Shown here: one piece after another, positions 35,286 through 63,611 of the stretch
Layout of the letters: every line of letters begins with the position of its first letter
Numbering within the stretch: position 1 is the first letter of the stretch
DNA from: Pristiophorus japonicus
Taxonomy: Eukaryota
DNA length: 64,000 nt
Assembly (NCBI RefSeq): GCF_044704955.1
Contig: NC_091989.1
Span: 85,498,001-85,562,000 of the forward strand
Direction: 5' to 3'
Program-made: the position numbers and the translations under genes
Notes under the pieces: model-generated
What the model was told of the DNA's origin: nothing
Seen by the model: only the letters and a program-made list of their open reading frames with translations
Databases searched by the model: none

Positions 35286-35340
35286 ATGCAAAGGTCACAA
35301 TTACGACACATTGCAGCACTTTATTTCTTTCATTGCACGG
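35286..35340 (+). CDS. IgSF receptor gene, leader exon (MQRSQLRHIAALYFFHCT-G)
   Basis: aaaccATG Kozak context, 18 codons + 1 nt, donor G|gtgatt in phase 1 joins in frame to the V exon, giving a plausible signal peptide ...HCTGFGDA. Confidence 0.7.
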
Positions 35341-35662
35341 GTGATTTCTACTTGTGGTTTCACACGTCATTACTTCATGGTGTAAAGCAGATTAGCTGCA
35401 AATATGTGGATATAAAAGCATCTGAGTTTCTTGTTGATTGGCTGAAAATAATTATTTTCTTTGTTTAATATGTCTCTGCGCATTGTGCTTCAGTGCATCG
35501 TGGTCCTGGGGATTATCTCCACAAGTATTTTCCGCAATCACCATTTTTAATGCTACTTTTTGTGCATTTTCTGCCCGTCTATACATCTTCATGTGTCATG
35601 CATTTCCCGTCAAGTTTCATATGTTTAATTAATGTCTGCATGTTTTTAATTTTCTTTGTTAG

Positions 35663-35980
35663 GTTTTGGCGATGCCATCTTCCAAGTGACCCAAAGCCCG
35701 CAGCACAAGATTGTGAGGGTCGGCGGAAATATTACCTTCGCTTGTGCATTCCCTCCTTTTCCAGATAATTCAGAAGTGAATGTTTTCTGGTGGAGATTCG
35801 ACAAAAGTATATATCTGCAACGCGGCTCGGACAAGCGAAAACAGTATTTCATCAGGAAAGGGCAAGGCTCCTTGCAGATCCTCGATATCCGTTTCCAGGA
35901 TGCTGGGGTTTATTACTGCGGAGTAATCCAACAAGGAAACACGATTATAAACGGAACTGGATCAACGCTTGTTGTCCACG
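35663..35980 (+). CDS. IgSF receptor gene, germline VJ-type V-domain exon
   Basis: Acceptor ttttctttgttag, donor G|gtaagt, phase 1/1. Motifs VTQSP, B-strand Cys (ITFAC), Trp (VFWWR), LQILDIRFQDAGVYYC, J-like GTGSTLVV. Confidence 0.95.
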
Positions 35981-36463
35981 GTAAGTTATATTGCAGGGAA
36001 TTATCTCACATGTAATATATAACGGAAAACATGAATAAGTGAGGTAAAATGATTTGTTGTTGATTTTTTACATTTTGTGAGCTGTACATTAATCCTCAAT
36101 GTTCACGATAAAATTCTAAATGAAATACTTTCAGCGCACACAATGTAATCATAAACATGAAGCACAGTATAGTATTTATTTTAACTGTTTCATGTTGGTT
36201 TTGATGTAGGCAATGTACAGAGATTGCGAAATAATTTGAAAATAGTTTAATAAGGTTTTGACGGGAAGTATCTAAATCCGCTCTGATTGGCACTGCATAT
36301 ATTTGTATCGACGTGTTTCTGAAGAAAGTATTATATTGCGTACATTCAGGCGATCTTTTAAGTTCTGTTATCGATAAATGACTTACATCTTTATCGATCG
36401 TGAGGAGCCTTTTAGGAACTTTCTCAAACGCCAGATGCAATTTGAGGGTTTTTGTTGAGCGGC

Positions 36464-38150
36464 ACATATAATCATAGAATTATAGAAATTTGGAGCATAG
36501 AAGGAGGCAATTTCAGCACATCCTTTCCGCGCCGGCTATCCAAGAGCTATCCAGCCGAATGCCACTTAATCGGTAGCCCTGTCGGTTACGGCACTTTAAG
36601 TACACATCCAAGTATTTTTTAAATGTGGTGAAGCATTCTGCCTCTACCACCTTTTTAGGCAGTGAGTTCGAAAACCCCACCACACTCTGGGTAATGGAAA
36701 TTCCCCTAATATCCCCTCTATACCTCTCTGCAAACACTTTAAATCTATGCCCCCATATTTGTTGAACTCTCTGGCAAAGGAAACAGGCCCTTCCTATCGA
36801 CTCTGTGCAAGCCCTTCATAATCTTATACACCTCAACCAGGTCTGCACTCTGCCTCCTCTGTTCCAAAGAAAACAGACCGAGCTTCTCCCATCTTACCTC
36901 ATAGCCAAAATTATTCAGTTCACGCAACATTCTTGTAAATCTCCTTTGCACCCATTTCAATGCAATCACATCTTTCCTGTAATATGGTGACAAGTGCAGC
37001 AAACAATACTCTAGCTACAGTCTAACCAGTTCAAGCATATGGTCCTTGCTCTTATATTCCATGGCTCGACTAATAAGACAATTCTTCCATATGCCTTTTA
37101 ACGACCTTATCTAACTGGCCTACTACATTCAGGGATCTGTGCACCTGCACTCGAAGGTCCCTTTGTTCCTCTACACTGTTCAGTGTTGTACAATTTAATG
37201 TGCATTCCCTTGCCTTGCTAGACCTCGCCAAATCCGTTAACCCATGTTATTCGAATTGAGTTTCATTTGCCGCTGTTCTGCCGACCTGACCAGTACATTA
37301 ATATCTTCCTGCAGTACGCAGCTTTCTTCTTCATTATTAACCACACAGCCAATTTCAGTGTGAAATGCAAACTTCTTAATCATAGCCCCAACATTCAGGT
37401 CCAAATGATTGATATATACAACAAGAAGCAAGGGATCCAGCACTGAGCCATGAGGAGGCCCACTGGATAATGCCTTCTCATCACAAAAACACCTATTAAC
37501 CATTACCATTTGCTTCCTGCCTCTGAACTAACTTTGCATCCAACTTGTCACATTTCCCTGGTTCCCTTGCCCATTAACTTTCATGATTAGTCTGCCAGTT
37601 GGGACCTTATCGAAAGCTTTGCTGAAATAAACATACATTACATCATACGCATTGTCCTCATTGATCCTCGTGGTCATCTCCTCGAAAAATGTAATCAAGT
37701 TATTCAGACACGAACTTCCCTTAACAAATCTATTTTAACAGTTGTTGATTAATTCATGACATTCCAAATGAAGATTTATTCTATCCCTCAGGATTTTTCC
37801 CAATAATATTCCCACCACTGAGGATAGGCTGACTGGCCTGTGATTATTCGGTCTATATCTTTCTCTCCTTTTAAACAGATTTTAAACATTAGCAGCTCTC
37901 CTGTCCTCTGGCACAACATCTCTAGGTAGTGAGGACTGGAAAATGAATGTCAGACCCTCTTTAGCTTCTCTGAAGAGCCAGTGATACATTTCATCTGGAC
38001 CCAGGGATTTATCAACTTTTAAAGCTGCTAAGCCCCTGACTACTTCCACTCTCACTATGTTTATCTCTTCTAATATTAAACACTCCTCCCCCCTCAGTGC
38101 AATATCAGATGCACAGTATTCATTAAAAATCTTTCCCGCATCATCTTCCT
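36464..38150 (-). mobile_element. CR1 3' portion in intron 2
   Basis: Tail catagaattatagaa; VQRRFTRML, GPPHGSVL, KSLGPDEMY motifs. Confidence 0.85.
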
Positions 38151-39029
38151 CCACACATTCGGGGGTGGGGGTGGGTGAGTTGTGAGGGAGGAGAGCACCT
38201 CTTACAGAAGATAGATTTTTCACGGAATTAAGGACCAGAGTGATCTCCTGGACTAATTTCAATCGCCGAATTGGGTTGGAGAGTAATTTCCCATTTTTCC
38301 TCCCAAATTGGACTATGCTTATCTCACCTGTTTTCCCTCTCCGAGTAGGTCAGATGGTTTTGCGTCGGGATGAGTGTCTATGCACAAGGCGTCCCAAATG
38401 TGTGTAACCAACTTGGTGGGCCAGAGGGTCTTTACCTGTCTGTCGTTGTGCCTATATTGGTATGTTCGTAAAAAAAACCCACGATAAATGGCCAGACACT
38501 GGATTAAAGCTATACTTTTGGGAATTAACCAATAAACCTTCGTTGTTTCTTTCAGTCGAGACGGATTAGCGCTCCGTTGGACCTACTGTATTTGTGGTTA
38601 GAATCCAACCGAGTCCGGGCTGCTGGTCATTATAATGTTAAAATATCTTGCAGCGTTGCTGGAGCGAAAAAAAAGCATACCTCTGCTAATCAATATCGCT
38701 ATAAACAGACACACTGGTCATAAATATCATTGCAATTTTTTGTATTTCCTGTTTGAAGCATTGCTGTCATATTTGCTCACATCATGTAAATGATTTAATT
38801 GAAAATAATAACTGTATTTGAGACTTTTGTGACATTTGTGACAGATGTGAAAGTAATGCGAATGATTTTTGGGAAGTTGTGAAAGTACAGCATGGCCGTC
38901 AAGGACATGATATTTTAGCAATTCAGTTAAATGCAGGTTATGGATTATCTCACTTTGAATTACGATATAATAATGTTCTAAATTTAAAATATTAAACGTA
39001 TATATTATTTTCCCTGATCCCCTCTATAG

Positions 39030-39341
39030 CTGTGCCAGCTAACCCGACGATTGTCTTCAAATCACCTGGTGGAAATTCAAACAATTATCCTATTCTTGTA
39101 TGTGAGACAGTTGACTTTTATCCGAATACTATCACCTTCAACTGGTACAAAAATACAAGCAACGTTGTAACCGGGATAAAAACCACGAAGCAGCTGAACC
39201 CAGCGGGACTATATGAAGCTATAAGTTACCTGCAAGAGACACAGCCAGTTCAGATAGCGACTTATTACAGCTGTTTGATATCTCATCCCATGCTCCAGAC
39301 TCCAAAATTAGCTTTTTATGTGGTGTCTCATTCGAAACCAG
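39030..39341 (+). CDS. IgSF receptor gene, C1-set domain exon
   Basis: Acceptor ccctctatag, donor G|gtaaga, phase 1/1. C1 signatures LVCETVDFYPNTITFNW and YSCLISH. Confidence 0.95.
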
Positions 39342-40356
39342 GTAAGATTTCAAGAACGAGGTCTTTATTAACAGCGCGCAGCATCATTCAGTTGGAAATC
39401 GGAGGCCAAATTTTGGGGACCGCACATGTGCAGTTAAATGTGGAGCTCATTAAGTTGCTGGCCGAAATGCTCTGCTCCTATAAAATCTCTTCCAGTCTGG
39501 CTCCCGGTGTGAATTTGTGGTTCTGAACTGACATATACGAAAAGAGCTGGGGACAGATCCTGAACATAGTGGCTTGCTGAACATAGTGGCAACGCGAATT
39601 TGGTTACAATGTGAATTCAGTATAGAGGGGGAAGCGGGTGTGAATTTTATTAAACTAAGTGGCAACAATGAATAATAAATTACCGGACCAGTGGAGTTAG
39701 AAAAAGTGGTGACATAATCAAAACACAAAGAGGAGCGGCAGAAATTGAGGACGTTAATATATATATATATATATACTGGCAAGTATCTTGATATCGCTTT
39801 GTTTGTGTGATATCTTTGGTGTTTAATGTTAAGCTTAATTAGTAATGATTTAATACTATTGAAAGAAAGTTTAAGTCAAAGGAGTTAATGATGAATTCGA
39901 AAAGCATTTAAAATAATTGATGAAAAAGTGGTGTAATTAATCATAGTAACAAATTACTAATTGATTTAACATTAGCTGAAGGGTCCTGAAGTAAATCTAC
40001 ACTTCAAATGACTAATTCGTTAAATAAATAATCTAAATCAAACAACTAAGTAAAACAATTAATTAATAAATAATAAAATGACCATGCTGAGATTGTACTA
40101 TGTGGGAGATTGCAGAAAACGAGTCTGTAGCAGACTGCGACACTTACAGAAAAGTTATCTGCCTCGTGACAGTAATGCTCAGAGTCGTGGAATTGGAGTC
40201 CAAGCTAGACACATTCCGGCAAATAATGGAGCAGGAGGAGAAATCACTGGTTAATTTATTCTAGTGCACAGTTACACACCAAAGGAAAGCATGAGTGCAG
40301 GAAGGGGACGCTGTAACTGCCATTCAACCGAGTCATGGGAACGTTGGATAAGTGGT

Positions 40357-41830
40357 AACATAATAAGAACATAAGAATATAAGAAATAGGAACATGACGA
40401 GGCCATACGGCCCCTCGAGTCTGCTCCACCATGCATTAAAATCATGGCTGATCTGATCTTGGACCCAGCTACATTCCTCCCCCGCTCCCCATAACCCCTT
40501 ATGCACTTATCATTTAAGAAACATTCTATTTCTGTCTTCAATTTATTCAATGTCCCAGCTTCCACAACACTCTCAGGTAGTGAATTCCACAGATTTACAA
40601 ACCTATGAGAAAAGAAATTGCACCTCATCTCCATTTGAAATGGACGGCCCCTTATTATAAGATCATGCCCTCTAGTTCTAGTCTCCCCCATCAGTGGAAA
40701 CATCCTCTCTGCGTCCACCTTGTCATGCTCCCTCATAATCTTATAAGTTTCGATAAGGTCACTTCTCATTCTTCTGAATTCCAATGAGTAGAGATCCAAC
40801 CTAGTCAACGTTTCATCATAACTCAACCTCCTCATTCCCGGAATCAACCTAGTGAAATTCTCTGGGCTGCCTCCATAGCAAGTAGATCCTTTCGTAAATA
40901 TGGAAACCAAAGCTGCACGCAGTATTCCAGGTATGGGCTCACCAATACATTGTATAGCTGTAGCAAGTCATCCCTGCTTGTATACTCCATCCCCTTTGCA
41001 ATAAAGGGCGAGATACCATTGGCCTTCCTGACTATTGCTGTACCTGCACACTATCCTTTTGTGTTTGATGCACAAATAGCCCCAGGTCCAACTGCACTGC
41101 GGCACTTTGTAATCATTCTCCATTTAAATAATAACTTTCTCTTTCATTTTGTTATGCCGAAGTGCATGACATCACACGTTTGAGCATTATACTCAACCTG
41201 CCAAATGTTTGCCCACTCACTTAGCCTGTCTATGTCCTTTTGTAGATTTTTGTGTCTTCCTCACAAATATGCTTTTCCTCCCATCTTTCTTTGATCAGCA
41301 AATTTGGCTACGTTACACTCAGTCCGTTCTTCCAAGTTGTTAATATAGATTGCAAAAAGTGAGGTCCCAGCACTGATCCCTGTGGCAACCCGCTAGTTAC
41401 TGGTTGCCAACCAGAGAATGAACCATTTATCCCGACTCTCTGTTCTCTCTCAGTTAGCCCATCCTCTATCCATGCAAAGATATCACCCTCAATCCCGTGA
41501 ACATTTACCTTGTGCATTAACCTTTTAAGTGGCACCTTGTCAAATCCCATCTTGAATTCCAAATATACCACATCCACTGGTTCCCCTTTATCCACCCTGT
41601 TCATTTCTTCTTCAAAGAACTCCAGCAAATTTGTCAAACATGACTTCCCATTCATAAATTCATGCTGACTCTGCCTGACCGAATTTTGCTTCTCCAAATT
41701 TCCTGCAACTGCTTCTTTAATAATGGATTCCAACATTTTCCCAAACACAGTTGTTAGGCTAACTGTTCTATGATTACCTGCATTTTGTCTGCCTCCTTTT
41801 TTTAAATAGGGCCATTACATTTGCAGATTT
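40357..41830 (-). mobile_element. CR1 3' portion
   Basis: Tail acataataagaacataagaa; [30 protein letters not shown]. Confidence 0.88.
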
Positions 41831-42834
41831 CCAGATTTGAAGATAATGCTCCTGCGCTTCAGCTATAAACTATTCGATGCGAGTGATAAGTTAGAAGCAC
41901 TGTGGAGCAGGGGCTTTTCCAAGGGGTGGAGACATAGAATATTTATAATTGTACGGTTTTAAGACTTAGTAGTAGTTAGTTATTTTTAAATCAGAATCGA
42001 GATTAAGTGACATATCAAAACGGCTGGGAAATACCTGTAAAGAGAGGGATGGGATACAATTGTTGTACTCCATGTCGGAAGCAGTGATATGGGAAAGATT
42101 GAAAAGCAAGACCTCACGGGTAATATTCAATGAATTATTACCGCAACCAGTGCAAATTGGCGTAGGGACAATTAGATTTGGAATGTCAACACGTATCTAA
42201 AAGAGTTGAGTGTGAAATTGGGATACTGGCTCCAGTAGTGGAATAGGAAGGAGCTGGGCCATTGGCCGGTCTGCATCTGAAAAGGTCTGGCCAAGATTCG
42301 AGCAGAATGGTTAAATGGTCTGCAAAAATGATTTTAAACTCATAACAAGGTGGGACGAAACTGCCTTAAATTATCAAAAACCTAACAATAAAAGAGGAAG
42401 GGAAAGAAATTAAAGGACAAACTAAAGAAAAGAGTAAGGATAACACGAATGGCGAGAGATTGGATGAAATCATCGAGCATAAATAGAACACAATTATTAA
42501 AAACAAGCAGAGAGGAATAATAAGATAAACTGTTGGCACAGCAATGTATTTTGTACTCAAAACATGAAGGATGAACTAGAGGCAATAGTTTTCCATAAGG
42601 ATGCGAATATCGTAGGGATTACTGAATCATGTCTAAGTAGAGAACAGAATTTTCAACTTAATATTGCCAGATCCGAATCACTGAGAAAGAAAGGGAATGA
42701 AGGAAAGAGTGTGGAGTAGCTATACAAGATAGAGATAAAATATGGCGGTAGACAAAAGGGATGTAACTAGCACTAATAAAGCTACATAATCCATTGGAGT
42801 GAGTTAAAAATTAAGAAAGTAAGGATATTAAAAT

Positions 42835-44338
42835 AAGTGGCTGCAGAGATAGTGGATGAATTGTTAGTAATCAGCAAAATTCCCCGGATTCTGGAGATGT
42901 TCCAACAAAATAGAAAACCGCAAATTTAACCCCACTATTTAAAAAAGGAGGCAGACGGACAGCAGGAAACTAGAGGCCAGTTAGCCTAATATCTGCCGAT
43001 GGGAAAATGCTGGAGTACATTTTTAAGGAAGCAACAGCAGGATAATTGGAAAGCATGATTCAATCAAGAAGCGTCAACATAGTTTTATGAAAGGGAACAT
43101 GTTTGACAAATTTGTTGCAGTTCTTAGGGAATGTAATGAGCAGAGTGAATATAGAAGATACGAGTGGATGTGGTGTATGTGGATTTCCAGAAGGCATTCG
43201 ATAAGTAGCCACATAAAAGTTTACTGCACAAGATAAAAGTTCATGGGATTGGGAGTAAGATATTAGCATTCAAAGAGGATTGTCTATCTAACCAAATACA
43301 GAGTTGTGGGATAAATGGGTCATTTTCCAGTTGGGGTGCCGCAGGGATTGGTGCTGGAGCCTCAACTATTTACAATCTATATTAATGACTTGGATGAAGG
43401 AACCGTGTATAATGTAGCCAAGTTTGCTGATGATACAAAGATGGGTGGGAGAGGAAATTGTGAGGACACAAGAAATCTACAAAGGGAGATCGACAGGCTA
43501 AATGAGTGGGCATAAATTTGATAGATGAAGTGTAATGTGGAAAAATGTGAGGTTATCCACTTTACTGGAAAAATAGCGAAGCCAATTATAATTTAAATGC
43601 AAAAAAATTACAAAATGCTCAGTACAGATACACCTGAGGTTCCATGTGCAGGAAACACAAGAGGTTGGTACGCAGGTACAGCAAGTAATCAGGAAGGCAC
43701 ATGCAATGTTGGCATTTATTGCAAGGGGATGGATTATTAAAGCAGAAAAGGCCTCTTCCAGCTGTGTGATTGCTGAGGCCACACCTAGACGACTGTATAC
43801 AGTTTTGGTCTTCTCATTTAAGGAAGGATATACTTGCATTGGAAGCTATTCAGGGAATTTTCACTCAGTTGATTCCGGAGTTGGCTTATGAAGATAGGTT
43901 AAGTAAGGTAGGCATATGCTCATTGGAGTTCAGAAGAATGAGAGGTGATCTTATCTAAACATAGAAAATAATGAGGGGGCTCGACATCGTGGATGCAGAG
44001 ATGATATTTCCACGTAGGTGAAACTAAAACTAGGGAGCATTGTCTGAGTATAAGGGGCCGCCCAATTTAAACTGAGACGATGAAGAATTTCTTCTCTCAG
44101 AGGGTTGTAATTGTGTGGAATTCTCTGCTCCAGAGAGCTGTGGAGGTTTGTCATTAAATATATTTAAGGCGCATATTGGCAACATTTTGAACAATAAGGG
44201 AATAAAGGGTTATGGGGAGCGGGTAGGGAAGCAGAGCTGAGTCTTTGATCAAATCATCCATTATCTTCCTAAATGGCGGAGCAGGCTCTAGCGGCCAAAT
44301 GACCTACTCTTGCTCGTATTAATTACATTCTTATGTTT
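42835..44338 (+). mobile_element. CR1 3' portion inserted in the ancient CR1
   Basis: VAAEIVD start, AKFADDTKMGG, EFRRMRGDL; tail ttcttatgttt. Confidence 0.85.
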
Positions 44339-48253: not shown

Positions 48254-51145
48254 TCAGTACCCCCTTCCTGCTTTCACGCCATACCCCTTGATCCCCCGAG
48301 TAGTAAGGACTTCATCTAACTCCCTTTTGAATATATTTAGTGAATTGGCCTCAACTACTTTTTGTGGTAGAGAATTCCACAGGTTCACCACTCTCTGGGT
48401 GAAGAAGTTTCTCCTCATCTCGGTCCTAAATGGCTTACCCCTTATCCTTAGACTGTGACCCCTGGTTCTGGACTTCCCCAACATTGGGAACATTCTTCCT
48501 GCATCTAATCTGTCTAAACCTGTCAGAATTTTAAACGTTTCTATGAGGTCCCCTCTCATTCTTCTGAACTCCAGTGAATACAAGCCCAGTTGATCCAGTC
48601 TTTCTTGATAGGTCAGTCCCACCATCCCGGGAATCAGTCTGGTAAATCTTCGCTGCACTCCCTCAATAGCAAGAATGTCCTTCCTCAAGTTAGGAGACCA
48701 AAACTGTACACAATACTCCAGGTGTGGCCTCACCAAGGCCCTGTACAACTGTAGCAAAACCTCCCTGCCCCTGCACTGAAATCCCCTCGCTATGAAGGCC
48801 AACATGCCATTTGCTTTCTTAACCGCCTGCTGTACCTGCATGCCAACCTTCAATGACTGATGTACCATGACACCCAGATCTCGTTGCACCTCCCCTTTTC
48901 CTAATCTGTCACCATTCAGATAATAGTCTGTCTCTCTGTTTTTACCACCAAAGTGGATAACCTCACATTTATCCACATTATACTTCATCTGCCATGCATT
49001 TGCCCACTCACCTAACCTATCCAAGTCACTCTGCAGCCTCATAGCATCCTCCTCGCAGCTCACACTGCCATCCAACTTAGTGTCATCCGCAAATTTGGAG
49101 ATCTACATTTAATACCCTCGTCTAAATCATTAATGTACAATGTAAACAGCTGGGGCCCCAGCACAGAACCTTGCGGTACCCCACTAGTCACTGCCCGCCA
49201 TTCTGAAAAGTACTCATTTACTCCTACTCTTTGCTTCCTGTCTGACAACCAGTTCTCAATCCACATCAGCACACGACCCCCAATCTCATGTGCTTTAACT
49301 TTGCACATTAATCTCTTGTGTGGGACCTTGTTGAAAGCCTTCTGAAAGTCCAAATATACCACATCAACTGGTTCTCCTCTGTCCACTTTACTGGAAGCAT
49401 CCTCAAAAAATTCCAGAAGATTTGTCAAGCATGATTTCCCTTTCACAAATCCATGCTGACTTGGACCTATCATGTCATCATTTTCCACATGCGCTGCTAT
49501 GCCATCCATAATAATTGATTCCATCATTTTACCCACTACTGAGGTCAGGCTGACCGGTCTATAATTCCCTGTTTTCTCTCTCCCTCCTTTTTTAAAAAGT
49601 GGGGTTACATTGGCTACCCTCCACTCCATAGGAACTGATCCAGAGTCAATGGAATGTTGGAAAATGACTGTCAATGCATCCGCTATTTCCAAGGCCACCT
49701 CCTTAAGTACTCTGGGATGCAGTCCATCAGGCCCTGGGGATTTATCGGCCTTCAATCCCATCAATTTCCCCAAAACAATTTCCTGACTAATAAAGATTTC
49801 CCTCAGTTCCTCCTCCTTACTAGACCCTCTGACCCCTTTTATATCCGGAAGGTTGTTTGCGTCCTCCTTAGTGAATACCGAACCAAAGTACTTGTTCAAT
49901 TGGTCTGCAATTTCTTTGTTCCCTGTTATGGCTTCCCCTGATTCTGACTGCAGGGAACCTACGTTTGTCTTTACTCACCTTTTTCTCTTTACATACCGAT
50001 AGAAACTTTTGCAACCCTGCAAGCTTCTTCTCGTACTCCATTTTCCCTGCGCTAATCAAACCCTTTGTCCTCATCTGCTGAGTTCTAAATTTCTCCCAGT
50101 CCCCGGGTTCGCTGCTATTTCTGGCCAATTTGTATGCCACTTTCTTGGCTTTAATACTATCCCTGATTTCTCTAGACAGCCACGGTTGAGCCACCTTCCC
50201 TTTTTTATTTTTACGCCAGACAGGGATGTACAATTGTTGTAGTTCATCCATGCGGTCTCTAAATGTCTGCCATTGCCCATCCACAGTCAACCCCTTACGT
50301 ATCATTCACCAATATATCCTAGCCAATTCACGCCTCATACCTTCAAAGTTACCCTTCTTTAAGTTCTGGACCATGGTCTCTGAATTAACTGTTTCTTTCT
50401 CCATCCTAATGCAGAAATCTACCATATTATGGTCACTCTTCCCCAAAGGGCCTCGCACAATGAGATTGCTAATTAATCCTCTCTCATTACACAAAACCCA
50501 GTCTAAGATGGCCTCCCCCCTAGTTGGTTCCTCGACATATTGGTCTAGAACACCATCCCTTATGCACTCCAGGAAATCATCCTCCACCGTATTGCTTCCA
50601 GTTTGGCTAGCCCAATCTATGTGCATATTAAAGTCACCCTTTATAACTGTTGTACCTTTATTGCATGCACCCCTAATTTCCTGTTTGATGCCCTCCCCAA
50701 CATCACTACTACTGTTTGGAGGTCTGTACACAGCTCCCACTAACGTTTTTTGCCCTTTGGTGTTCTGCAGCTCTACCCATATAGATTCCACATCATTCAA
50801 GCTAATGTACCTCCTAACTATTGCCTTAATCTCCTCCTTAACCAGCAATGCTACCCCACCTCCTTTTCCTTTTATTCTATCCTTCCTGAATATTGAATAC
50901 CCTTGGATGTTGAGTTCCAAGCCCTGATCATCCTGGAGCCACGTCTCCATAATCCCAATCACATCATATTTGTTAACATCTATTTGCACAGTTAATTCAT
51001 CCACGTTATTGCAGATACTCCTTGCATTAAAACACAAAGCCTTCAAGCTTGTTTTTGTAACACCGTTTGTCCTTTTAGAATTTTGCTGTACAGTGGCCCT
51101 TTTTAATCTTTGCCTTGGGTTTCTCTGCCCTCCACTTTTCCTCAT
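48254..51145 (-). pseudogene. CR1 ORF2 (APE endonuclease plus reverse transcriptase); one stop and about two frameshifts
   Basis: CFNARSI, IMETWL, YRPP, GDFN, SDH; [28 protein letters not shown]. Breaks near 50306, 50010 and 49100. Confidence 0.93.
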
Positions 51146-51222
51146 CTCCTTTCTGTCTTTTGCTTTTGCCTCCTTTTTGTCTCCCTCTGTCTCCCTGCAT
51201 TGGTTCCCATCCCCCTGCCATA

Positions 51223-52161
51223 TTAGTTTAACTCCTCCCCAACAGCACTAGCGAACACTCCCCCTAGGACACTGGTTCCGGTCCTGCCCAAGTGCAGACC
51301 GTACTGGTCCCACCTCCCCCAGAACCGGTTCCAATGCCCCAGGAATTTGAATCCCTCCCTGCTGCACCACTGCTTAAGCCACGTATTCATCTCTGCTGTC
51401 CTGCGATTCCTACTCTGACTAGCACTTGGCACTGGTAGCAATCCCGAGATTACTACTTTTGAGGTCCAACTTTTTAATTTAGCTCGTAGCTCCTTAAATT
51501 CGTTTCGTAGGACCTCATCCATTTTTTTACCTATGTCGTTGGTACCAATGTGCACCATGACAACTGGCTGTTCTCCCTCCCTTTTCAGAATGTCCTGCAC
51601 CCACTCCGAGACATCCTTGACCCTTGCACCAGGGAGGCAACATACCATCCTGGAGTCTCGGTTGTGGCTGCAGAAACGCCTATCTATTCCCCTCACCATT
51701 GAATCCCCTATCACTATCGCGCTCCCACTCTTTTTCCTGTCCTCCTGTGCAGCAGAGCCAGCCACGGTGCCATGAACTTGGCTGCTGCTGCCCTCCCCTG
51801 ATGAGTCATTCCCCCCAACAGTACTCAAAGCGGTGTATCTGTTTTGCAGGGGGATGACCGCAGGGGACCCCTGCACTACCTTCCTTGCACTACTCTTCCT
51901 GCTGGTCTTCCATTCCCTATCTGGCTGTGGACCCTTCTCCTGCGGTAAGACCAACTCGCTACACGTGCTACTCACGTCATTCTCAGCATCGTGGATGCTC
52001 CAGAGTGAATCCACCCTCAGCTCCAACTCCACAACGCGAACCGTCAGGAGCTCGAGGCGGATACCCTTCCCGCACATGTAGTCGTCAGGGACACCGGAAG
52101 TGTCCCTGAGTTCCCACATGGTACAGGAGGAGCATAACACGCGACCGAGCTCTCCTGCCAT
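51223..52161 (-). CDS. CR1 ORF1p (zinc finger/coiled coil plus SGNH esterase-like domain), 312 aa
   Basis: CSSC...CGK, heptad-like LELLTVRVVELELRVDSL, IVIGDSMVRG, PGA, VHIGTND, GLHL. Confidence 0.9.
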   Translation of the reverse strand: MAGELGRVLCSSCTMWELRDTSGVPDDYMCGKGIRLELLTVRVVELELRVDSLWSIHDAENDVSSTCSELVLPQEKGPQPDREWKTSRKSSARKVVQGSPAVIPLQNRYTALSTVGGNDSSGEGSSSQVHGTVAGSAAQEDRKKSGSAIVIGDSMVRGIDRRFCSHNRDSRMVCCLPGARVKDVSEWVQDILKREGEQPVVMVHIGTNDIGKKMDEVLRNEFKELRAKLKSWTSKVVISGLLPVPSASQSRNRRTAEMNTWLKQWCSREGFKFLGHWNRFWGRWDQYGLHLGRTGTSVLGGVFASAVGEELN

Positions 52162-52343: not shown

Positions 52344-52735
52344 GCCTTTTATTGACCTCTGTTGATCCCTGGACTCACGCCTCAGCGACCACGAACTCCC
52401 AATGCCTCTCGCGGCCTTTTATAGGCCTCTGTTGATCCCTGGACTCACGCCTCAGCGACCACGAACCCCCGGTGCCTCTCGCGGCCTTTTATAGGCCTCT
52501 GTTGATCCCTGGACTCACGCCTCAGCGACCACGAACTCCCGCTGCCTCTCGCGGCCTTTTATATGCCTCTGTTGATCCCTGTACTCACGCCTTAGCGACC
52601 ACGAACTCCCGCTGCCTCTCGCGGCCTTTTATAGGCCTCTGCTGATCACTGGACTCACGCCTCAGCGGCCACGAACTCCCGCTGCCTCTCGCGGCCTTTT
52701 ATAGGCCTCTGTTGATCCCTGGACTCACGCCTCAC
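52344..52735 (-). repeat. 70-bp tandem monomer array (about 5.6 copies) at the CR1 5' end
   Basis: gttgatccctggactcacgc recurs at 52361, 52431, 52501, 52571, 52641, 52711. Confidence 0.95.
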
Positions 52736-55700: not shown

Positions 55701-56894
55701 CCAGTGGGAACTGTCCAGGATCCAGGGAATTTTGGTCGATGCCAACCAATGCATGCACTAACTCTGCACACACTTCTTTTAAGACTCGAGGATGCAGGCC
55801 ATCATGTCCATGGGCCTTATTCACCTTTATTGCCACAAGTTTGTCTAATACATTTTGTCTAGTGAAAGAGATTGATTTAAGTTCACGCTCCCAATAGGCT
55901 ATTCATTATCTATTATTATTGGGATGCTTTTAGTGTATTTTACCATGAAGACCAATACAAAATACTTGTCAAATCTCTGCAGTTTCCCTGTTTCCCATTA
56001 TTAATTTCCAAGTCACATCCTCTCAGAGATCAACTTTTACCTTAGCGACAGTTTTCCTTTGTACATATCTGAAGAAGCCCTTACTGTTTGTTTTTGTTAA
56101 TGTTATGCGTGATTACTCTCATAAATTTTCTTCTTTCTCTTTCTTTTTTTTAGTCGTCCTTTGATGGTCTCTAAGAATTTTCCAAACCTCTGGCCTACCA
56201 TTAAATTTCGCAACAATGTATGCCTTTGGTTTTAATTTGATACCAAAATTAACTTCCTTATATTAAAACTGGTGGTTCCACCTTCTCCTAAAGTCTTTCC
56301 TTCTCACTGGAATATGTATATGCTGAGAGTTATAAAATATTTCCTTAAAAGTCTGCCACTGCTCATCTACCGTCTTATCCATTAAGCTATTTTCCCAGTT
56401 CACTTTAGTCAACTCTGTCTTCATATCATTGTAAATGTCTTGATTTATGTTCAGGGCATCGTTTACGACCCAAGTTTCTCAGCCTCAAACTGAATGAGAG
56501 ATTCTAAAATGCTAAATTCACTTTTCCCTAGGCGATTACTATGAGATCATTAACTAAGCCTATCTCATTACACATTACCAAATCTTAAATAGCCTGTCCC
56601 TGGTTGGTTCCACAATGTATTTATCTGAGAAGACATGTTAAATACATTCTATATCAAATCGTCCTTAGGATAGCTTTTCAAATTGGATTTGTCCAATATA
56701 TCAGAAGATTAAATCACCTATGGGTATTGCCATACCATTCAGACAAGCCTCCAAAATGCTTTGATTTATATTCTGTCCTACAGCTTAACTACTGTTGGAG
56801 CAAGATATAGATTTATCCCACTAGTGATATCTTACTCTTACAATTTCTTAGCTCTACCCAAAATGATTCTACATCTTGATCTTCTGCGCCAAAT

Positions 56895-58810
56895 TAGAAC
56901 ATAAGAACATAAGAAATAGGAACAGTAGTAGGCCATATGACCCCTCGAGCCTGCTCCGTCTTTTAATAATATCATGGCTGATCTGATCATGGACTCAGCT
57001 CCGCCTACCCGCCCGCTCCCCATAACATAGAAACGTAGAAAATAGGTGCAGTAGTAGGCCATTCGGCCCATCGAGCCTTCACCGCCATTCAATGAGTTCA
57101 TAGCTGAACATACAACTTCATTACCCCATTCCTGATTTCTCGCCATACCCCTTGATCCCCCTAATAGTGAAGACTACATCTAACTCCTTTTTTAATATAT
57201 TTAGTGAATTGGCCTCAACAACTTTCTGTGGTAGAGAATTCCACAGGTTCACCACTCTCTGGGTGAAGAAGTTTTTCCTCATCTCGGTCCTAAATGGCTT
57301 ACCCCTTATCCTTAGACTGTGACCCCTGGTTCTGGACTTCCCCAACATTGAGAACATTCTTCCTGCATCTAATCTGTCAAAACCCGTCAGAATTTTAAAC
57401 ATTTCTTTGAGATCCCCTCTCATTCTTCTGAACTCCAGTGAAGGCAAGCCCAGTTGATCCAGTTTTTCTTGATATGTCAGTCCTGCCATCCCGTGAATCA
57501 GTCTGGTGAACCTTCGCTGCACTCCCTTAATAGCAACACTGTCCTTCCTCAAGATAGGAGACCAAAACAGTAGATAATACACCAGGTGTAGCCTCACCAA
57601 GGCCCTGTACAGCTGTAGTAACAACTCCTTGCCCCTGTACTCAAATCCCCTCGCTATGAAGGCCAACATGCCATTTGCTTTCTTAACCACCTGCTGTACC
57701 TGCATGCCAACCTTCAATGACTGATGTACCATGACACCCAAGTCTCGTTGCACCTCGCCTTTTCCTAATCTGCCATCATTCAGATAATAGTCTGTCTCTC
57801 TGTTTTTACCACCTTATCCCCTTATCTTTTAGAAACTGTATATTTCTGTCTTAAATGTATTCAATGTACCAGCTTCCACTGCTTTCTGAGGCAGCAAATT
57901 TCACTGATTTAGAATCCCCTGAGAGAAGAACTGTTTCCTCATCTCTGTTTTAAATGGGCGGCCCCTTATTCTAAGATCACGCCAAGATTTCTAATCTCCC
58001 CCATCACTTGGAACATCCTCTCTGTATCCCCCCTGTCAAGCTCCCTCGTAATCTTATACGTTTCAATAAGATCACCTCTCATACTTCTGAATTCCAATGA
58101 CTGGATCCCAACCTTCTCAACCTTACAAATAAGTCAACACCCTCATCCCAGGAATCAACCTAGTGAACCTTCTCTGAACTGTCTCCAAAGCAAATATATC
58201 ATTTCGTAAATATGGAAATCAAAACTGCATGCAGTATTCCAGATGTGGCCTCATCAATACCTTATATAGCTGTAGCAAGTCTTCCCTGCTTTTATACTTA
58301 TCCCCTTTGCAATAAAGGCCAAGATTCCAATGGCCTTCCTGATCCCTTGCTTTACCTGCACAATTTCCTTTTGGGTTTCATGCACAAGTACCCCCAGTTC
58401 CCGCTGCACTTTGCAATCTTTCTCCATTTAAATATTAACTTGCTCTTTAATTTTTTCTGTCAAAGTGCATGACCTCACACTTTCCAACCTTATACTCCAC
58501 CTGCCAATTTTTTGCCCATTCACTTCGTCAGTCTATGTCCTTTTGCAGATTTTTTGTGTCCTCCTCACACATAGCTTTTCCTCCCATCTTTATATCATCA
58601 GCAAACTTGGCTATGTTACCTCAGTCCCTTCTACCAAGTCATTAATATAGATTGTAAATTGTTGGGATCCCAGCACTGATTGCTGCGCCACTCCACTAGT
58701 TACTGGTTGCCAACCAAAGAATGAACCATTTATCCTGACTCTGTTTTCTGTTAGTTAGACAATCCTCCATCCATTCTAATATATTACCCCCAAACCCGCG
58801 AACTTTTAAT
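56895..58810 (-). mobile_element. CR1 inserted in the previous element, itself split by a younger CR1
   Basis: Tail agaacataagaacataagaa; 3' UTR ...cccataac continues as ttatccccttatc at about 57812. Confidence 0.8.
57025..57811 (-). mobile_element. Young 5'-truncated CR1, same subfamily as the 48157 copy
   Basis: 210-aa ORF nearly identical to the C-terminus of ORF 48254-49075. Confidence 0.92.
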
Positions 58811-60094
58811 TTCTCAATAATGCACTGATCTCATCCTTTATTAACAGAGTTACCCTACCTCATTTTCCTTTCTCTCCATCTCTCCGAAATGGCAAATACC
58901 GCTGAACATTCAGTTCCGAACCTTGGTTAGCTTGCAAGCAGGTCTCTGCAATGGCAATCAGATCATACTCATTTATTTATTTGTGTACCTTCAACTCATC
59001 TATCTTGTTACGACTGCTGCATGCATTCAGACAAAGAGGTTTTAATGTTGTTGTTTTCCCATTTTTCCCTATCTAAGTCTTCTTTCTAGTGCACGATGAT
59101 AAATCCACGCTCTGTCCCTTCCTGTCACATGTGGTTATCATTACCCCTATCGCTACCCTTCATTATTGGCTTCTCCTTTGTCTTTCAATTTTTAAATTCC
59201 CCGTCACATGAATCCTCCTCCCCTACTATATAGTTAAAAAGCCTAGCTACAGCCCTAGTTATTCGATTTGCCAGCACACTGGTGGGAGCATGGTTCAAGT
59301 GAACCCAGTAAATTGGAACAGCACTGTCTTTCCCCAGTACTGGTGCCAGTGTTCTATGAATCAAAATCCATTTCTCCCACATCAATCGTTGAGCTACGCA
59401 TTCAGCTCTCTGATCTTATTTACACTCTGCCCAATTATTCGTGGTTCACGTAGTAATACAGACATCATTACTTCCGTGGCTCTATTTTAAAATTTAGTCC
59501 CTAGCTGCTCCTAGACCCTCAGCAGAACCTCATGTCCTACCTATGTCGTTGGTACCTGCGGGGTGCACGACAACTGGATCTTTCTCCTCCCACTCCAACT
59601 TCTTCCCCAGCCCAGTGGATATGTTATGGCGGGAAATATGGGAAACTTGAGAAATATTTTATTGCACAAAATATTTCACTGCACAAAACATACAGCAATC
59701 TGGATGCAAGCATAGCGATAACTGTCTCCCAATAAATAAAGACATACAGGCTGAGCGAACGGGACATAAATCTCAGTTCACCAGATATTTAATACCAAGT
59801 TACGTCGGTTTGCAAATTGTGCAAGAGATCCAAGATATTTTATCGGATTCATAACGTAATTACAATGTAAATGATTACTGATACAAAAGCAAGTTGCCTC
59901 ACAGTGGAACAACAATTATTATGTAAATTAATTCTCAAATTATATTATTGTTAGTAATTCTCATGCTGATTTCATTCTTGATTGAAAACTCTCCCTGTAG
60001 ACATTTGCGTGTGCTACTATCAAAGTTATACCCATGTACGTTTCGATCGAGTACCAGCAGCTTGTACCTCTGTTAGAAAATTCAATGTTACATA

Positions 60095-60590
60095 GAATTT
60101 ACAGCTGAGAAGCACAGCTTTGGCAGATCCGCCCGTGTTGATGCTCCACCCGAATCTCGTGCCGCTCTATTAACTTCATCACATTCTCGACAGCTGCTTC
60201 TATTCCTTTGTTCCTCATATATCTATATAGATACCGTTTTGATGGATCTGTACTCTTCAGCTCAACCATCCCTGAGATAGCGAGTTCGACATTTTCACCA
60301 ATCTCTGACAAAAATACATTTCATGTGAATTGGTTATTGGATTAATCAGTCAGTCTTATATTAATGACCCATTGGTCTGGACTCACCACCACGATAAACT
60401 TCTGATCCATGCCTACCCTAACCAAATTCTTCATAATTTTAAGGCACCTACAAGTACACCTCTGATTCTTGTATTTTCCGGAGAAAAGAACCCCAGCCAC
60501 ATAATTTTTGTTGATAGTTATACCTTTCAATTCTAGAATTATTCATGCAAATATTTTTTGCACTGTCTCTAGTCCCTCTATATCCTATCA
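60095..60590 (-). mobile_element. Old CR1 3' fragment
   Basis: catagaatttacagc tail; decayed RT C-terminal region. Confidence 0.55.
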
Positions 60591-61532
60591 AGGCTCTCTC
60601 TCACACCAAGAGTTTTTCTTCAACTTCAGATCTTTCTCTTCGCCTGCCATATATTTTCTCTAAGCTGTAGCCAGTGGAATTTGTAAGTTCTTCAAAAGCT
60701 TCAAACTTTTAAATTTTGATGTTTTCAAATTTGCGGCAAACACGATTTCCTAAAAGAATTGATGGCGTTTTATATTCTCTTTTGCTTCCTGTGGCCTCGA
60801 CTCCATCTCCTGGTAGGATTCTCCAAGGCGCTTTGTTTGTCTCTGGCTCTTCGACTGGCTTCAGTCTCAAATTACCATGATTCTTTTCTAACTGTAGTAA
60901 TCCCAGCTGCTGGTGATCCTGCCGACCCAATGCCATCAGGTTTCCTGTCAGTTTTACTGGTTCCAGCAATATTATTCCCGCGGACTGTGCCTCCCTTCCT
61001 ATAAATGATTGAACTATTTAGACCAGGTCCAGAACAAGTCAGGTGCCCCAAAGCTCAGATCAATATACAGGTAAAGCGTGCTATAATTGGATCTATATTT
61101 CTTATTAGCGGAAAATATCAAAACTGCGACTTGTCTGCTGTATATTGTGCTGAGGTGGGTCCAAGCAATTGCACGGCACAGCTGGATTCGGTCAGGTAGA
61201 AGGCTTTCACTTGCAATATCCAACATTAGACTTTGAACCAAACACACAGAAAAAATGAACACCCAAATCAATGAAAGGGGCATTGGGGACGTGCCTGTGA
61301 TAAATACCAATAATCAAGCCTAATCTCATCAAAATGTAGTTTATTATATTTATAAAAACTTTTCAGTTCCGATACTCCAAAGTGAAATGAACTTCATAAA
61401 AATAGAGTTTAAATAAATGGATGACCTTAATTAATACTGTTGCAGTACCGAAATTTCAGTCTTTTTTGTGTTTTGACTATATGGTAACTCCTAAATTGCA
61501 CAGCTTCTAAGTTACATTTATTAATCTTACAG

Positions 61533-61646
61533 GAATTGACATTAAAAGCAAAAACTTAATTACAGTTGCATGTATAGTCAGTGGACTCATATGTCTAGTG
61601 CTGGGGATCATGATTGGAAAACTATGCCATTTACGGAATCACATAG
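61533..61646 (+). CDS. IgSF receptor gene, transmembrane exon (G-IDIKSKN-LITVACIVSGLICLVLGIMIG-KLCHLRNHI)
   Basis: Acceptor ttaatcttacag, donor AG|gtaagg, 114 nt, phase 1/1, in frame with the C1 exon. 21-aa hydrophobic helix followed by basic residues. Absent from the ORF track. Confidence 0.85.
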
Positions 61647-62138
61647 GTAAGGAATGGCTTCACTTTTTAGGAATAACAAGCTCAATAAAAATATAAGGGC
61701 TCGTCAGTAGGTCAAGAGACGCGGCCTTACTTTTACAATCAGTAATGGTAATGTTTTAGTGGGACTAGAAGGGATGTCTGATAACTTGAATAGAGAAATC
61801 CTGTTTCCGTCACGAATACAAGATACATGTTTGTATGTTTAAGCAGCTGAGATGAATGTTTATTTAAAATTGACTTAGAATTCTGTTACAACATTTTATG
61901 CTTTCTTTTAGTAGAGGTACAATTCAGGGTCTGTGATTTTGAGCAGCTAGTTATAGAAATGCTTGCATGAATTATCATACAGGATAATTAAGATGCATTG
62001 AGATATATGTTGAAGTGCCATCACAAAATATTGACAGATATTAGGCTAAGTCGACTTCGTATGTATGTCTATTTGCTCACTTGCTCCGTAAACACGAAAC
62101 TCAATTTATTTCTGCACTTTTTATTTTGCTGAACACAG

Positions 62139-62176
62139 AGACAATTCAAGATGGATCTCATAATTGTGAAGAGCTG
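62139..62176 (+). CDS. IgSF receptor gene, cytoplasmic exon (E-TIQDGSHNCEEL)
   Basis: Pyrimidine tract ...ttttgctgaacacag, donor CTG|gtatgt, phase 1->0, in frame with the TM exon. Confidence 0.65.
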
Positions 62177-63517
62177 GTATGTTCACAAATTTTACCCCTT
62201 GTTTGTAACATAAAGCGACGGTATTATTTTAAAATAAACATTCGTCTATGTTAGGTCAATGTTAAGTAAATGTATAGAGCTTAATATTTGATGTTGTATA
62301 TATGTTCAATCTGATGCACTACGTGAGATTTACAAGATGAAAGCAAACTACCGTAGTCTCCTTTATCTTTATCCTTGTAAAGTACCAGAGATGTTTTAAC
62401 TGGAAACCGAACCAACTCTGTCCTGATTTCATGAAATCCGAGCTAGAAAAAAATTCACACGTCACAACAGTTCCACAATTTTCGCTTCGGACACTTTACT
62501 CTCACTGTGGTAAAATTGCAAGCCATTCTTATTAGTGTTAACTTGCTTATGTTACTACTTTACCGCATATTTCACATGGATTGAGATTTACTATGCCATC
62601 AGAGGCCATGCAAAATCTGGGCTAATACACAATTTAAGCTCATGTACAGCAAACGAAATAAAGAGAGGGAAAGATTTATGAGATTAAGAGAATAATGAAA
62701 AAGACACAAACGAAAAGCAAAATAATAAATTAATGTTTTTTTAAAAATCACCAACTTTTGTAAAATTACATCTTTAGTGCCGGAGAGATTGTATTGAAGA
62801 AACGAAAAGTTATCACACCGTTAAAAATTCACATATACCTGAATTCACAAGCCCTAACTGCTTCTATCATGTATAGTGGGCAACTGGTGGGGAAGTACTG
62901 AAACTTAGCATCTTTACATATAATTCAATGCCGAGTCGATCGGCAATGTATGGGTGTCAGGAAGCTTGTGGAGCTGCAGGGCAAATCGGAAAGCAATTTC
63001 ATGATTTCTTGGTTTATTGTGCATGTGCGGAGGCCAGACGTTGCTGTCCAATTGACTTCGTAACAATGGTGAGCACGGATAGCCTCACTATTATTTTAAC
63101 GCAAAAGTCCAGCTAACATTACACGATAGGACGTGGAATAGAAAGAGCTGAGAAAAAATTATTGCACAGTTTTGCTGCTAATCTCCAAATCCCATGCTAA
63201 TGTCGACTAAAAATCGACAGGGATACTGAAGAAAAGTCATCAATGTGCATTCGTTTTTTTTGCCATGTATCCCTTTAATCAGGGTTCTACCATTCTTCGG
63301 CCGAATAATTGCTATCGAATTTAGAGATGATTTACTCGTTGAACTTGGATGATACCAGAAAATGAGGTCTGCTTTTTTATCCCTGAGTGTCTTTCTGTTT
63401 CGGATGGAGACAGATGAGGCTTTGGGATTGTTGTTGATGATTTTTTTGAAAACTTCCACGTAAAATGTTGTAGCAATGACGTAAGAAAAACAATAACTAA
63501 AATAAATTCATTTACAG

Positions 63518-63533
63518 CGAAGAAGGACGGACG
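63518..63533 (+). CDS. IgSF receptor gene, probable 16-nt cytoplasmic microexon (RRRTD)
   Basis: Acceptor ttcatttacag, consensus donor G|gtaagt, phase 0->1, open after exon 62139-62176. Confidence 0.45.
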
Positions 63534-63611
63534 GTAAGTTCGAGTAGTAGCGCCTTGAATTTAGAAATAAAATTGAATTTGGTCAAATTTACAGCTGACA
63601 CCAAACTCGCA

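Follow-up and report, generated by a model that had tools for sequence, protein, structure and literature searches.

Witnesses of the origin of Ig and TCR are actively searched for among non-rearranging genes that pair a VJ unit with a true C1 domain, and a case of this kind has been made for SIRP, for UrIg and for UrIg2 (PMC2785349, PMC12227049). A locus in the sawshark Pristiophorus japonicus, contained in a stretch of 64,000 nt (hereafter, the window), raises the question of whether this cartilaginous fish retains another one. The present analysis indicates that the locus is very probably the P. japonicus orthologue of a conserved shark gene, present once per species, that belongs to a large family of chondrichthyan receptors. 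By analogy, its product is most likely an inhibitory receptor in the style of SIRP-alpha and PD-1.

A preliminary description of this DNA had proposed six exons. The four central ones, all on the plus strand, stand with the sizes, phases and AG/GT sites given to them. The V exon, which includes a J-like strand, occupies positions 35663-35980 (318 nt; acceptor TTGTTAG, donor GTAAGT; phase 1 to 1). It is followed by a C1-set exon at 39030-39341 (312 nt; CTATAG, GTAAGA), by an exon at 61533-61646 that encodes the stalk, the TM helix and the stop-transfer sequence (114 nt; TTACAG, GTAAGG; phase 1 to 1), and by a first cytoplasmic mini-exon at 62139-62176 (38 nt; ACACAG, GTATGT) that reads (E)TIQDGSHNCEEL. 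The TM helix, LITVACIVSGLICLVLGIMIG, had been correctly recognized: it appears as an uncharged segment in a hydrophobicity scan, and its exon is matched by the TM segments of the orthologues P0158 and P0160 (tblastn, E = 5e-9 and 2e-9). This exon is phase-symmetric, and the reading frame is kept if it is skipped. The mini-exon is used by a public model of the locus, P0163, and is homologous to TESNQDGSHSEEP in P0160.

The two outer exons of that proposal did not fare as well. Judged by homology, the true leader is the plus-strand exon at 35470-35524 (55 nt, phase 1), with its ATG at 35470 and a GTATTT donor at 35525; it encodes MSLRIVLQCIVVLGIIST plus 1 nt. Alignments (tblastn) of the orthologues P0160 and P0151 start at residue 1, i.e. 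at 35470, and about 20 of the 31 N-terminal residues in the leader region are shared identically with P0160. This exon fits the signal peptides of the orthologues. It replaces the former candidate at 35286-35340 (MQRSQLRHIAALYFFHCT), which was rejected as poorly hydrophobic and devoid of a homologue. The 16-nt exon proposed at 63518-63533 of the plus strand (RRRTD plus 1 nt; TTTACAG, GTAAGT; phase 0 to 1) has perfect splice signals and the right phase, yet P0163 reads KKERT at that place, and a search of 61000-64000 found KKERT encoded nowhere in the window. The 16-nt exon is thus unverified, and the one actually used is probably another. As had been noted before, the gene is incomplete at its 3' end, which lies beyond base 64000. 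The locus is set in LINE and LTR debris, and one intron spans 22 kb. The window contains no other gene and no further C1-like ORF; there is a single C1 exon.

The gene is real and expressed. An 812-nt contig from X1, a public run whose type and tissue are not on record, joins V to C1 exactly (35980 to 39030, GT..AG) with 0 mismatches, and it is colinear with the germline over V and the J-like strand. The same contig runs 400 nt past the C1 donor at 39341, which indicates that this donor is used. RNA-type contigs span 35712-35979 of the V exon, and the introns are uncovered by X1 contigs except at repeats. A lack of spliced reads linking V, C1 and TM had been named as one finding that would speak against the proposal; the V-C1 contig supplies such a junction, and the other junctions, including that between C1 and TM, are predicted, as are the signal peptide and the membrane topology. 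With the C1-TM junction a predicted one, the main product could be a form that lacks the TM helix.

P0163 shows that the locus is already in UniRef (UniRef100_UPI00398F7CEA, P. japonicus), where it is named “NCR3LG1-like”. The model is identical to the window gene over the V and C1 exons, with the V exon corresponding to its residues 37-141 (100%). Its first exon is LINE-derived and maps to 22485-22592 of the window; P0163 therefore comes from the same assembly. The tyrosine-motif tail is known from P0163 alone, a flawed model with a wrong 5' end that skips the TM exon (61533-61646), and comprises an ITIM (LTYAAL) followed about 20 residues on by an ITSM (TEYAAI), encoded by an exon outside the window.

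The domains themselves are well defined. The V exon is recognized by the Pfam V-set model (E = 2.7e-10) and encodes a short domain with 57 residues between its two cysteines and without a C'' region. The J-like G strand, NGTGSTLVV, lies within this exon, and neither an RSS heptamer (CACAGTG/CACTGTG) nor a nonamer occurs in 35600-36100. The gene is non-rearranging, with V and J-like strand in a single exon that lacks an RSS, and the preliminary description was accurate on this point. It was equally so for the C1-set domain, which the corresponding Pfam model recognizes at E = 8e-11; the butyrophilin-type Ig-C model gives E = 0.02, below the cut-off of that model. The V consensus of the family, built from 34 members, comprises WW[KR] after strand C, DAGVYYC and NGTGSxLxV, and the window exon carries FWWR, DAGVYYC and NGTGSTLVV. 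Similarly, the family has a single C1 with the pattern LVCxTxxFYP ... WYKN ... GLYE ... YxCxVSH, followed by TM; the window exon carries LVCETVDFYP, NWYKN, GLYEA and YSCLISH. In an AF2 model of the orthologue P0158, the V and C1 domains mostly have pLDDT values above 90.

The window gene belongs to a nine-tip, one-per-species orthogroup of sharks with a support of 1.0, in which the branching largely follows the species tree. Within this orthogroup, identities to the window gene are 52-72% for V and 54-66% for C1, and those of paralogues are at most 50%. The orthogroup is nested inside a large, clustered multigene family of V(J)-C1-TM receptors, which has both inhibitory long-tailed and short-tailed forms. 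ITIM/ITSM-type motifs are present in 40 of 85 complete members sampled, and others combine a short tail with basic residues at the TM. Searches with the V exon retrieve the family at E values of 1e-34 downwards, and P0163 matches the family profile at 4.6e-93. All but one of the 55 profile matches (54) come from sharks, rays or chimaera, all 20 clusters looked up among the V-exon matches are chondrichthyan, and the profile search recovered no bony-vertebrate intermediate or teleost homologue.

Mislabeling by annotation pipelines, which had been anticipated, is evident: the orthologues bear the automatic names “immunoglobulin lambda-1 light chain-like”, “tapasin-related-like”, “CD276 homolog”, “NCR3LG1-like” and “PTPNS1 (SIRP-alpha)-like”, and RefSeq labels across the family include IgL-lambda-like, tapasin-like, SIRP-alpha-like, B7-like and more. 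Our literature search found no paper that describes a chondrichthyan V(J)-C1 family, the members of which exist as RefSeq models only. A whole family with the VJ-C1 layout in cartilaginous fish is apparently undescribed. Clear orthology to a described gene, which would have spoken against the preliminary description, was not found.

We propose a type I membrane protein as the product. It would comprise a signal peptide, a short V domain, one C1 domain, an uncharged TM helix and a cytoplasmic tail, the last mostly encoded beyond the window and carrying one ITIM and one ITSM. The V domain would bind a conserved ligand. SIRP-alpha and PD-1 act through phosphorylated tail tyrosines that recruit SHP-type phosphatases. 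The motifs LTYAAL and TEYAAI resemble the tyrosine motifs of SIRP-alpha, and the arrangement of an ITIM and, about 20 residues on, an ITSM of the form TEYAxI is similar to the tail of PD-1. By this analogy, the phosphorylated tail tyrosines would recruit SHP-1/SHP-2-type phosphatases and damp the activation of the receptor-bearing cell, and skipping of the TM exon may give a soluble form; tail signalling, ligand and soluble isoform are all postulated. A “SIRP-like” label for this molecule refers to architecture and motifs, its V domain matching the SIRP V domain no better than other V domains. In that architectural sense, the earlier assignment to a SIRP-type-like molecule of a cartilaginous fish agrees with the V-C1-TM layout and with the source of the DNA, P. 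japonicus.

Several known systems share parts of this layout. In NKp30 (NCR3), too, the V domain is non-rearranging and includes a J-like GxG strand. This receptor is not known to have a C domain, and a charged residue in its TM serves for signalling, whereas the sawshark gene has a C1 exon spliced to V, an uncharged TM helix and an inhibitory-type tail. The teleost NITRs are likewise non-rearranging V(J) receptors, inhibitory or activating, whose genes make up a large, clustered family restricted to one lineage, but they are not known to have a C1-set domain like that of the shark family. NKp30 serves in published work as a VJ relic linked to the MHC. The ectodomain of PD-1, a member of the CD28 family, is a single V domain without C1, unlike that of the sawshark gene, which has a C1 domain besides V. 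UrIg is a secreted molecule with three C domains, and UrIg2 contains as many as 9-11 (Flajnik et al. 2025, PMC12227049). Linkage to the MHC or the Ig/TCR complex is taken as a further mark of this pair. These elasmobranch genes resemble ours in their single-exon VJ, split leader, C1-type domains and automatic annotation as IgL, and UrIg2 (PDB 9dmx) ranks second among the PDB matches of the C1 exon and likewise among those of the family profile; however, the sawshark gene has one C1 domain rather than at least three, is equipped with a TM helix and an ITIM/ITSM tail, and is part of a large multigene family rather than a single-copy pair. With Ig light and TCR chains it shares the V-J-C1 order, the leader intron and the C1 motifs FYP and YxCxVxH, but it differs from them in having an ITIM tail, no RSS or separate J segment, and a predicted V-C geometry that is extended rather than elbow-bent.

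An important question is whether any of these resemblances reflects a closer kinship. A stronger claim than our main explanation, but one compatible with it, is that the family is a true chondrichthyan orthologue or co-orthologue of tetrapod SIRP, i.e. an expansion of the same ancestral gene and not an independent lineage. The common layout (V with J-like strand, C1, TM and ITIM), the pairing of long-tailed with short-tailed forms, many RefSeq names (“PTPNS1-like” or “SIRP-beta-1-like”) and matches of the family profile across V-C1 to SIRP-alpha (2wng, E = 2e-31) and SIRP-gamma (1.4e-27) point this way. Mammalian SIRPs have two C1 domains, and their family comprises the inhibitory SIRP-alpha and the activating SIRP-beta (Hatherley et al. 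2009, PMC2785349). The sawshark gene, by contrast, has one C1 domain and a short V domain, and its family is much larger and was seen in chondrichthyans only in these searches. Further, Ig lambda and UrIg2 score equally well or better with the same profile, SIRP is not in the top 60 matches for the V exon or for the V profile, the fold search ranks SIRP-gamma 42 (Z = 13.8), under B7-H6, Neph1, PD-L2 and butyrophilin, and a bony-vertebrate intermediate was not recovered. No sequence closeness to SIRP above other V-C1 proteins emerged from the profile, V-exon and fold searches, and we consider SIRP orthology possible but rather unlikely. Descent from near the root of the antigen receptors is more doubtful still. 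Under that reading, the pre-RAG precursor would have left a close relative in this gene, and Ig/TCR would be more closely related to it than to SIRP, B7 or NKp30. A VJ contained in one exon, with its GxG strand, then a genuine C1 and then a TM is indeed the layout predicted for the ancestor; the best PDB matches of the C1 exon are the Ig lambda C domain, UrIg2 and MHC II beta2; the nearest Atlas cluster of the V exon is automatically named “putative antigen receptor”; and VNAR, CD79b and TCR V are the nearest folds to that of the V domain. The similarity to Ig/TCR is nevertheless generic (19-26% identity, with near-tied Z scores), the predicted V-C geometry is extended like that of B7/nectin rather than Fab-like (rmsd 9-10 Å to light chains), and the gene has very many paralogues, in a family whose ITIM-bearing or activating tails are of the kind usual in innate paired receptors. 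By sequence and by fold, the V and C1 domains are about equally distant from Ig/TCR, UrIg2, SIRP, MHC class II and B7, and these comparisons could show no special closeness to Ig/TCR, SIRP or UrIg. The special “proto-antigen receptor” of the preliminary description is therefore not supported, given this equidistance, the many paralogues and the presence of the gene among database predictions. It is similarly improbable that the family is an independent, ancient lineage of the pre-RAG precursor, sister to Ig/TCR/UrIg and not an offshoot of SIRP/B7; the slowly evolving single-copy orthogroup, which has a conserved V domain and an ITIM/ITSM tail, would then stand nearest to the ancestral inhibitory receptor and have a conserved self ligand.

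The remaining readings carry less weight. The names “NCR3LG1-like”, “CD276 homolog” and “PD-L1-like” suggest a B7-family or NCR3LG1 (B7-H6)-like ligand rather than a receptor; PD-L1 provides the best single-domain PDB matches of the V exon (E about 1e-7), and the leading two-domain fold matches (Z = 15-16) include B7-H6, B7-H3 and PD-L2. Proteins of the B7/butyrophilin family have a B7-type IgC domain besides a V domain that is devoid of a J-like GxG strand, and serve as ligands of CD28-family or NKp30 receptors. Yet the PD-L1 alignments end before the G strand, which carries the J-like GxG motif in the sawshark gene, those Z scores are tied with unrelated adhesion molecules such as Rst and Neph1, the constant domain scores better with the C1-set than with the butyrophilin-type model (E = 8e-11 versus 0.02), and the ITIM and ITSM are typical of receptors. 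These facts make a ligand very unlikely. Even less credible is that the gene is a pseudogene in decay, or that chance has lined up ORFs among repeats: the LINE/LTR surroundings, the 22-kb intron, the defective public model and the 3' end outside the window might suggest it, but the four core exons are all open with consensus splice sites, a spliced contig exists in run X1, and conservation in nine shark species is strong. Finally, a germline-joined immunoglobulin light-chain gene would accord with the V-J-C1 order, the split leader, the RefSeq name “immunoglobulin lambda-1 light chain-like” of orthologues, and the lambda chain that is the best single V-C stretch in the PDB for the family profile (71 bits). 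The TM exon and cytoplasmic ITIM/ITSM tail, the V domain without C'' but with the family-specific WW[KR] and NGTGS motifs, and the one-to-one shark orthogroup, unlike the multi-cluster IgL, leave this reading with almost no credence.

The sawshark gene by itself leaves the picture of antigen-receptor origins unchanged. The analysis does yield a corrected gene model for a mis-annotated gene, and it indicates that the labels “IgL-lambda-like”, “tapasin-like” and “NCR3LG1-like” in shark genomes often conceal this V(J)-C1 family. At least one member of the family has been kept single-copy across sharks; this suggests a conserved ligand and a checkpoint role like that of SIRP-alpha or PD-1. The window gene is a tractable candidate for ligand hunting.

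The gene in the window is well conserved but otherwise an ordinary representative of a large chondrichthyan receptor family. The preliminary description had taken it for a non-rearranging VJ-C1-TM gene and a candidate proto-antigen receptor. The first part of that proposal stands, as the gene is real, expressed and non-rearranging; the idea that it is a unique proto-antigen receptor does not. The four exons at the core of the gene, all on the forward strand, had been placed exactly: the V exon at 35663-35980 (318 nt, phase 1-1), the C1 exon at 39030-39341 (312 nt, phase 1-1), the stalk/TM exon at 61533-61646 (114 nt, phase 1-1) and a cytoplasmic mini-exon at 62139-62176 (38 nt, phase 1-0). Consensus AG and GT(A/G) sites flank all four, and their phases are mutually compatible. 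The V exon encodes a V-set domain (Pfam, E 2.7e-10) in which just 57 residues separate the cysteines, and the G strand, NGTGSTLVV, lies inside the exon itself. The RSS heptamer is absent from 35600-36100, as had been claimed, and so is the nonamer. The C1 exon specifies a true C1-set domain (Pfam, E 8.1e-11), again as described, in which both canonical motifs, LVCxxxxFYP and YxCxxxH, are present. No charged residue interrupts the TM helix (LITVACIVSGLICLVLGIMIG). The window contains no runs of N, and neither second copies of the V, C1, TM or cytoplasmic exons nor paralogues of the gene were found within its 64 kb. In the J-like strand of the V exon, NGTGS, which is invariant in the family, doubles as an N-x-T glycosylation sequon, so most members may carry a glycan where the G strand begins.

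Both ends of the gene differ from those first proposed. The leader assigned to 35286-35340 (MQRSQLRHIAALYFFHCT) is unconvincing, and it is replaced here by an exon at 35470-35524 (+; 55 nt, phase 1), which reads MSLRIVLQCIVVLGIIST, has the donor GTATTT and aligns to the signal peptides of orthologues. In tblastn searches with the shark orthologues P0160 and P0151, the alignments begin with residue 1 at 35470. The leader intron is then 138 nt, a classic split-leader layout. At the 3' end, the proposed sixth exon (63518-63533, 16 nt) has ideal splice signals and the right phase, but it reads RRRTD, whereas P0163, the public model of this gene, has KKERT. No exon encoding KKERT is present in 61000-64000; thus, the true 3' exons, among them that bearing the signalling motifs, lie beyond base 64000. 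The 63518-63533 segment could be either a pseudo-exon or an exon used alternatively. It resembles the KKERT-D of P0163 offset by one residue and encodes KKERT in no frame, and it may derive from the real mini-exon by decay or duplication. The tail of the gene, whose exon is outside the window, is taken from P0163: LTYAAL fits the ITIM consensus, and TEYAAI, 23 residues further on, fits the ITSM consensus.

Transcript evidence comes from X1, the only public run in which the V exon is present; it was examined as Logan contigs, and its run type is not on record. An 812-nt contig with no mismatches covers 35881-35980 and then 39030-39341, spanning a GT..AG intron. It runs on for 400 nt past the C1 exon, and those 400 nt are absent from 39342-41199. 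Coverage of the intron in this run is confined to repeats, with unique intron sequence bare. These facts establish that a spliced V-C1 transcript exists and that the C1 donor is used. The preliminary description had called for spliced reads linking V, C1 and TM; the read evidence covers the V-C1 join and the C1 donor, and the leader-V, C1-TM and TM-cytoplasmic joins are predicted.

Searches were made with individual exons of the window, and the orthologue P0158 and the model P0163 represented the complete protein. The V exon, compared with 1.84 billion representatives, returned single-domain matches that were 40-60% identical and lay in proteins 220-420 residues long, and all of those looked up were from sharks, rays or elephant shark. 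P0163 (UniRef100_UPI00398F7CEA, Pristiophorus japonicus), named “natural cytotoxicity triggering receptor 3 ligand 1-like”, shows no difference from the window across both Ig exons. Its first coding exon (MLLEDLMECFKTTMGLDKVDSDNLLPLLEAKRTRGC) is found at 22485-22592 (+), 13 kb upstream of the V exon and within an ORF derived from a LINE. Given this identity and the location of the first exon inside the window, the gene has already been predicted. The prediction is nonetheless defective: its N-terminus is repeat-derived, with no signal peptide, and it leaves out the TM exon. A TM-less form is also annotated in Chiloscyllium plagiosum (isoform X2, P0164, versus isoform X1, P0209), so that public models of two species, P. 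japonicus and C. plagiosum, omit this exon. Because the TM exon is 114 nt long and phase-symmetric, a soluble V-C1 isoform produced by skipping it, with the cytoplasmic peptide still in frame, is plausible.

Repeats are found around and within the gene. The 22-kb C1-TM intron harbors a nearly intact LINE on the minus strand (48254-52161), whose ORF1 has a GDSL-esterase-like domain (51223-52161); its APE-type endonuclease (50306-51145) and its reverse transcriptase (48254-49899) are split by a frameshift or stop. Related RT-tail fragments occur at about 23516-24352, 30184-30570, 40272-40910 and 57121-57753. Two LTR-retrotransposon-like stretches on the plus strand (about 17000-20700 and 25100-29300) contain stop-broken ORFs for gag (zinc knuckle), aspartyl protease, RT-RNase H and integrase. 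At 63600-64000, beginning about 70 nt after the 63518-63533 exon, lies a low-complexity tract rich in purines (GA/GGA). Its minus strand reads as a long proline/serine/leucine ORF (63561-63986), although the tract is probably simple-repeat sequence and not coding.

The family to which the gene belongs has a tightly conserved ectodomain. An alignment of 34 members displays the motifs WW[KR], DAGVYYC, NGTGSxLxV and VPPTPL, together with LVCxTxxFYP, WYKNG, GLYExSS and YTCxVSH. A profile of the family retrieved 55 proteins at E <= 1e-10, 54 of them chondrichthyan; the remaining match is a Polypterus protein, P0205, which is not an orthologue but a B7-H6-like model with more C1 domains fused to it. 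Mislabelling by automatic pipelines, which had been anticipated, does occur: members are called IgL lambda-1-like, tapasin-related-like, NCR3LG1-like, TCR-beta-like, MHC class II-like, PTPNS1/SIRP-alpha-like, SIRP-beta-1-like, CD276 homolog and PD-L1-like in RefSeq, and the family has no curated name. Full-text searches, covering mainly papers outside subscription, found no paper describing it; it is database-predicted and apparently unpublished. The members of one species mostly share a single chromosome-sized contig, as expected if the family is clustered on one chromosome. Maximum-likelihood analysis of 85 V-C1 ectodomains places the gene in a clade of nine tips (support 1.0) with one sequence per shark species and a species-like topology: Heptranchias, Pristiophorus, Heterodontus, Mustelus, two Scyliorhinus, Chiloscyllium, Stegostoma and Rhincodon. 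Identity to the window gene within this orthogroup is 52-72% for V and 54-66% for C1, compared with 50% or less for any paralogue.

The relationship of this gene to known families is less sharply defined, for the evidence singles out no one relative. The V exon is closest to the V domain of PD-L1 and to I-set-like domains, with TCR V lower in the ranking, and the C1 exon is closest to Ig lambda C, UrIg2 (PDB 9dmx, E 2e-10) and MHC class II beta2. A V-only family profile was swamped by multi-Ig adhesion proteins in the PDB and was non-discriminating; its best coverage through the G strand was of VNAR, TCR V and CD79b. The family profile spans V-C1 of a lambda chain in one stretch (71 bits), as well as V-C1 of UrIg2 (E 5.5e-36), SIRP-alpha (E 2e-31) and SIRP-gamma. 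For the shark orthologue P0158, the AF2 model has pLDDT values above 90 across most of both Ig domains, and its V domain has no C'' strand, in agreement with the 57-residue cysteine spacing. Taken alone, this V domain superposes best on skate VNAR (Z 14.9) and the C1 domain on HLA-DP/DQ beta2 (Z 15.0 and 14.5). Together, the two domains adopt an extended arrangement, like those of Rst/Neph1, B7-H6, B7-H3, PD-L2 and butyrophilin (Z 15-16.7), with UrIg2 (Z 14.0) and SIRP-gamma (Z 13.8) ranked lower. Many families tied in a wide VIA search (Z 14-16), and Foldseek against the PDB returned mostly Fab light chains (TM ~0.43, rmsd 9-10 A). Homodimer prediction with two copies of P0158 residues 22-228 scored 0.23, against a mark of 0.32, a result that weighs on neither side of the question of pairing.

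Some candidates can be dismissed on architecture. UrIg and UrIg2, whose description is among the closest literature (PMC12227049; PMC10751288), have at least three C domains, and NKp30 has no C domain. A rearranging or germline-joined IgL is ruled out by the TM, the ITIM tail and the absent RSS. SIRP-alpha is alike in both architecture and tail, and the paper on its structure, also among the closest literature, makes a case for its connection with the evolution of antigen receptors (PMC2785349). The sequence comparisons did not reveal a specific relatedness to SIRPs, and for that reason membership in the SIRP family proper should not be considered established.

ITIM- or ITSM-like tail motifs occur in 40 of the 85 sampled members. 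Others (e.g. P0014, P0016 and P0063) are short-tailed and have basic residues in or beside the TM. Judged from their sequences, these long motif-bearing and short basic-TM forms match what is seen in paired receptors, one type inhibitory and the other activating. The tail of the window gene is read as inhibitory by comparison with SIRP-alpha, PD-1 and receptors like them. By this analogy, the phosphorylated tail would recruit SHP-type phosphatases, making an inhibitory receptor the likeliest function. Further, a V domain so well kept among sharks suggests that the endogenous ligand is conserved too. The analysis demonstrates the structure of the gene, its V-C1 splice, the types of domain and its place in the family; the signalling and the ligand are inferred. 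The gene is thus most likely an inhibitory checkpoint-type receptor, and it is of moderate interest for the evolution of immunity.
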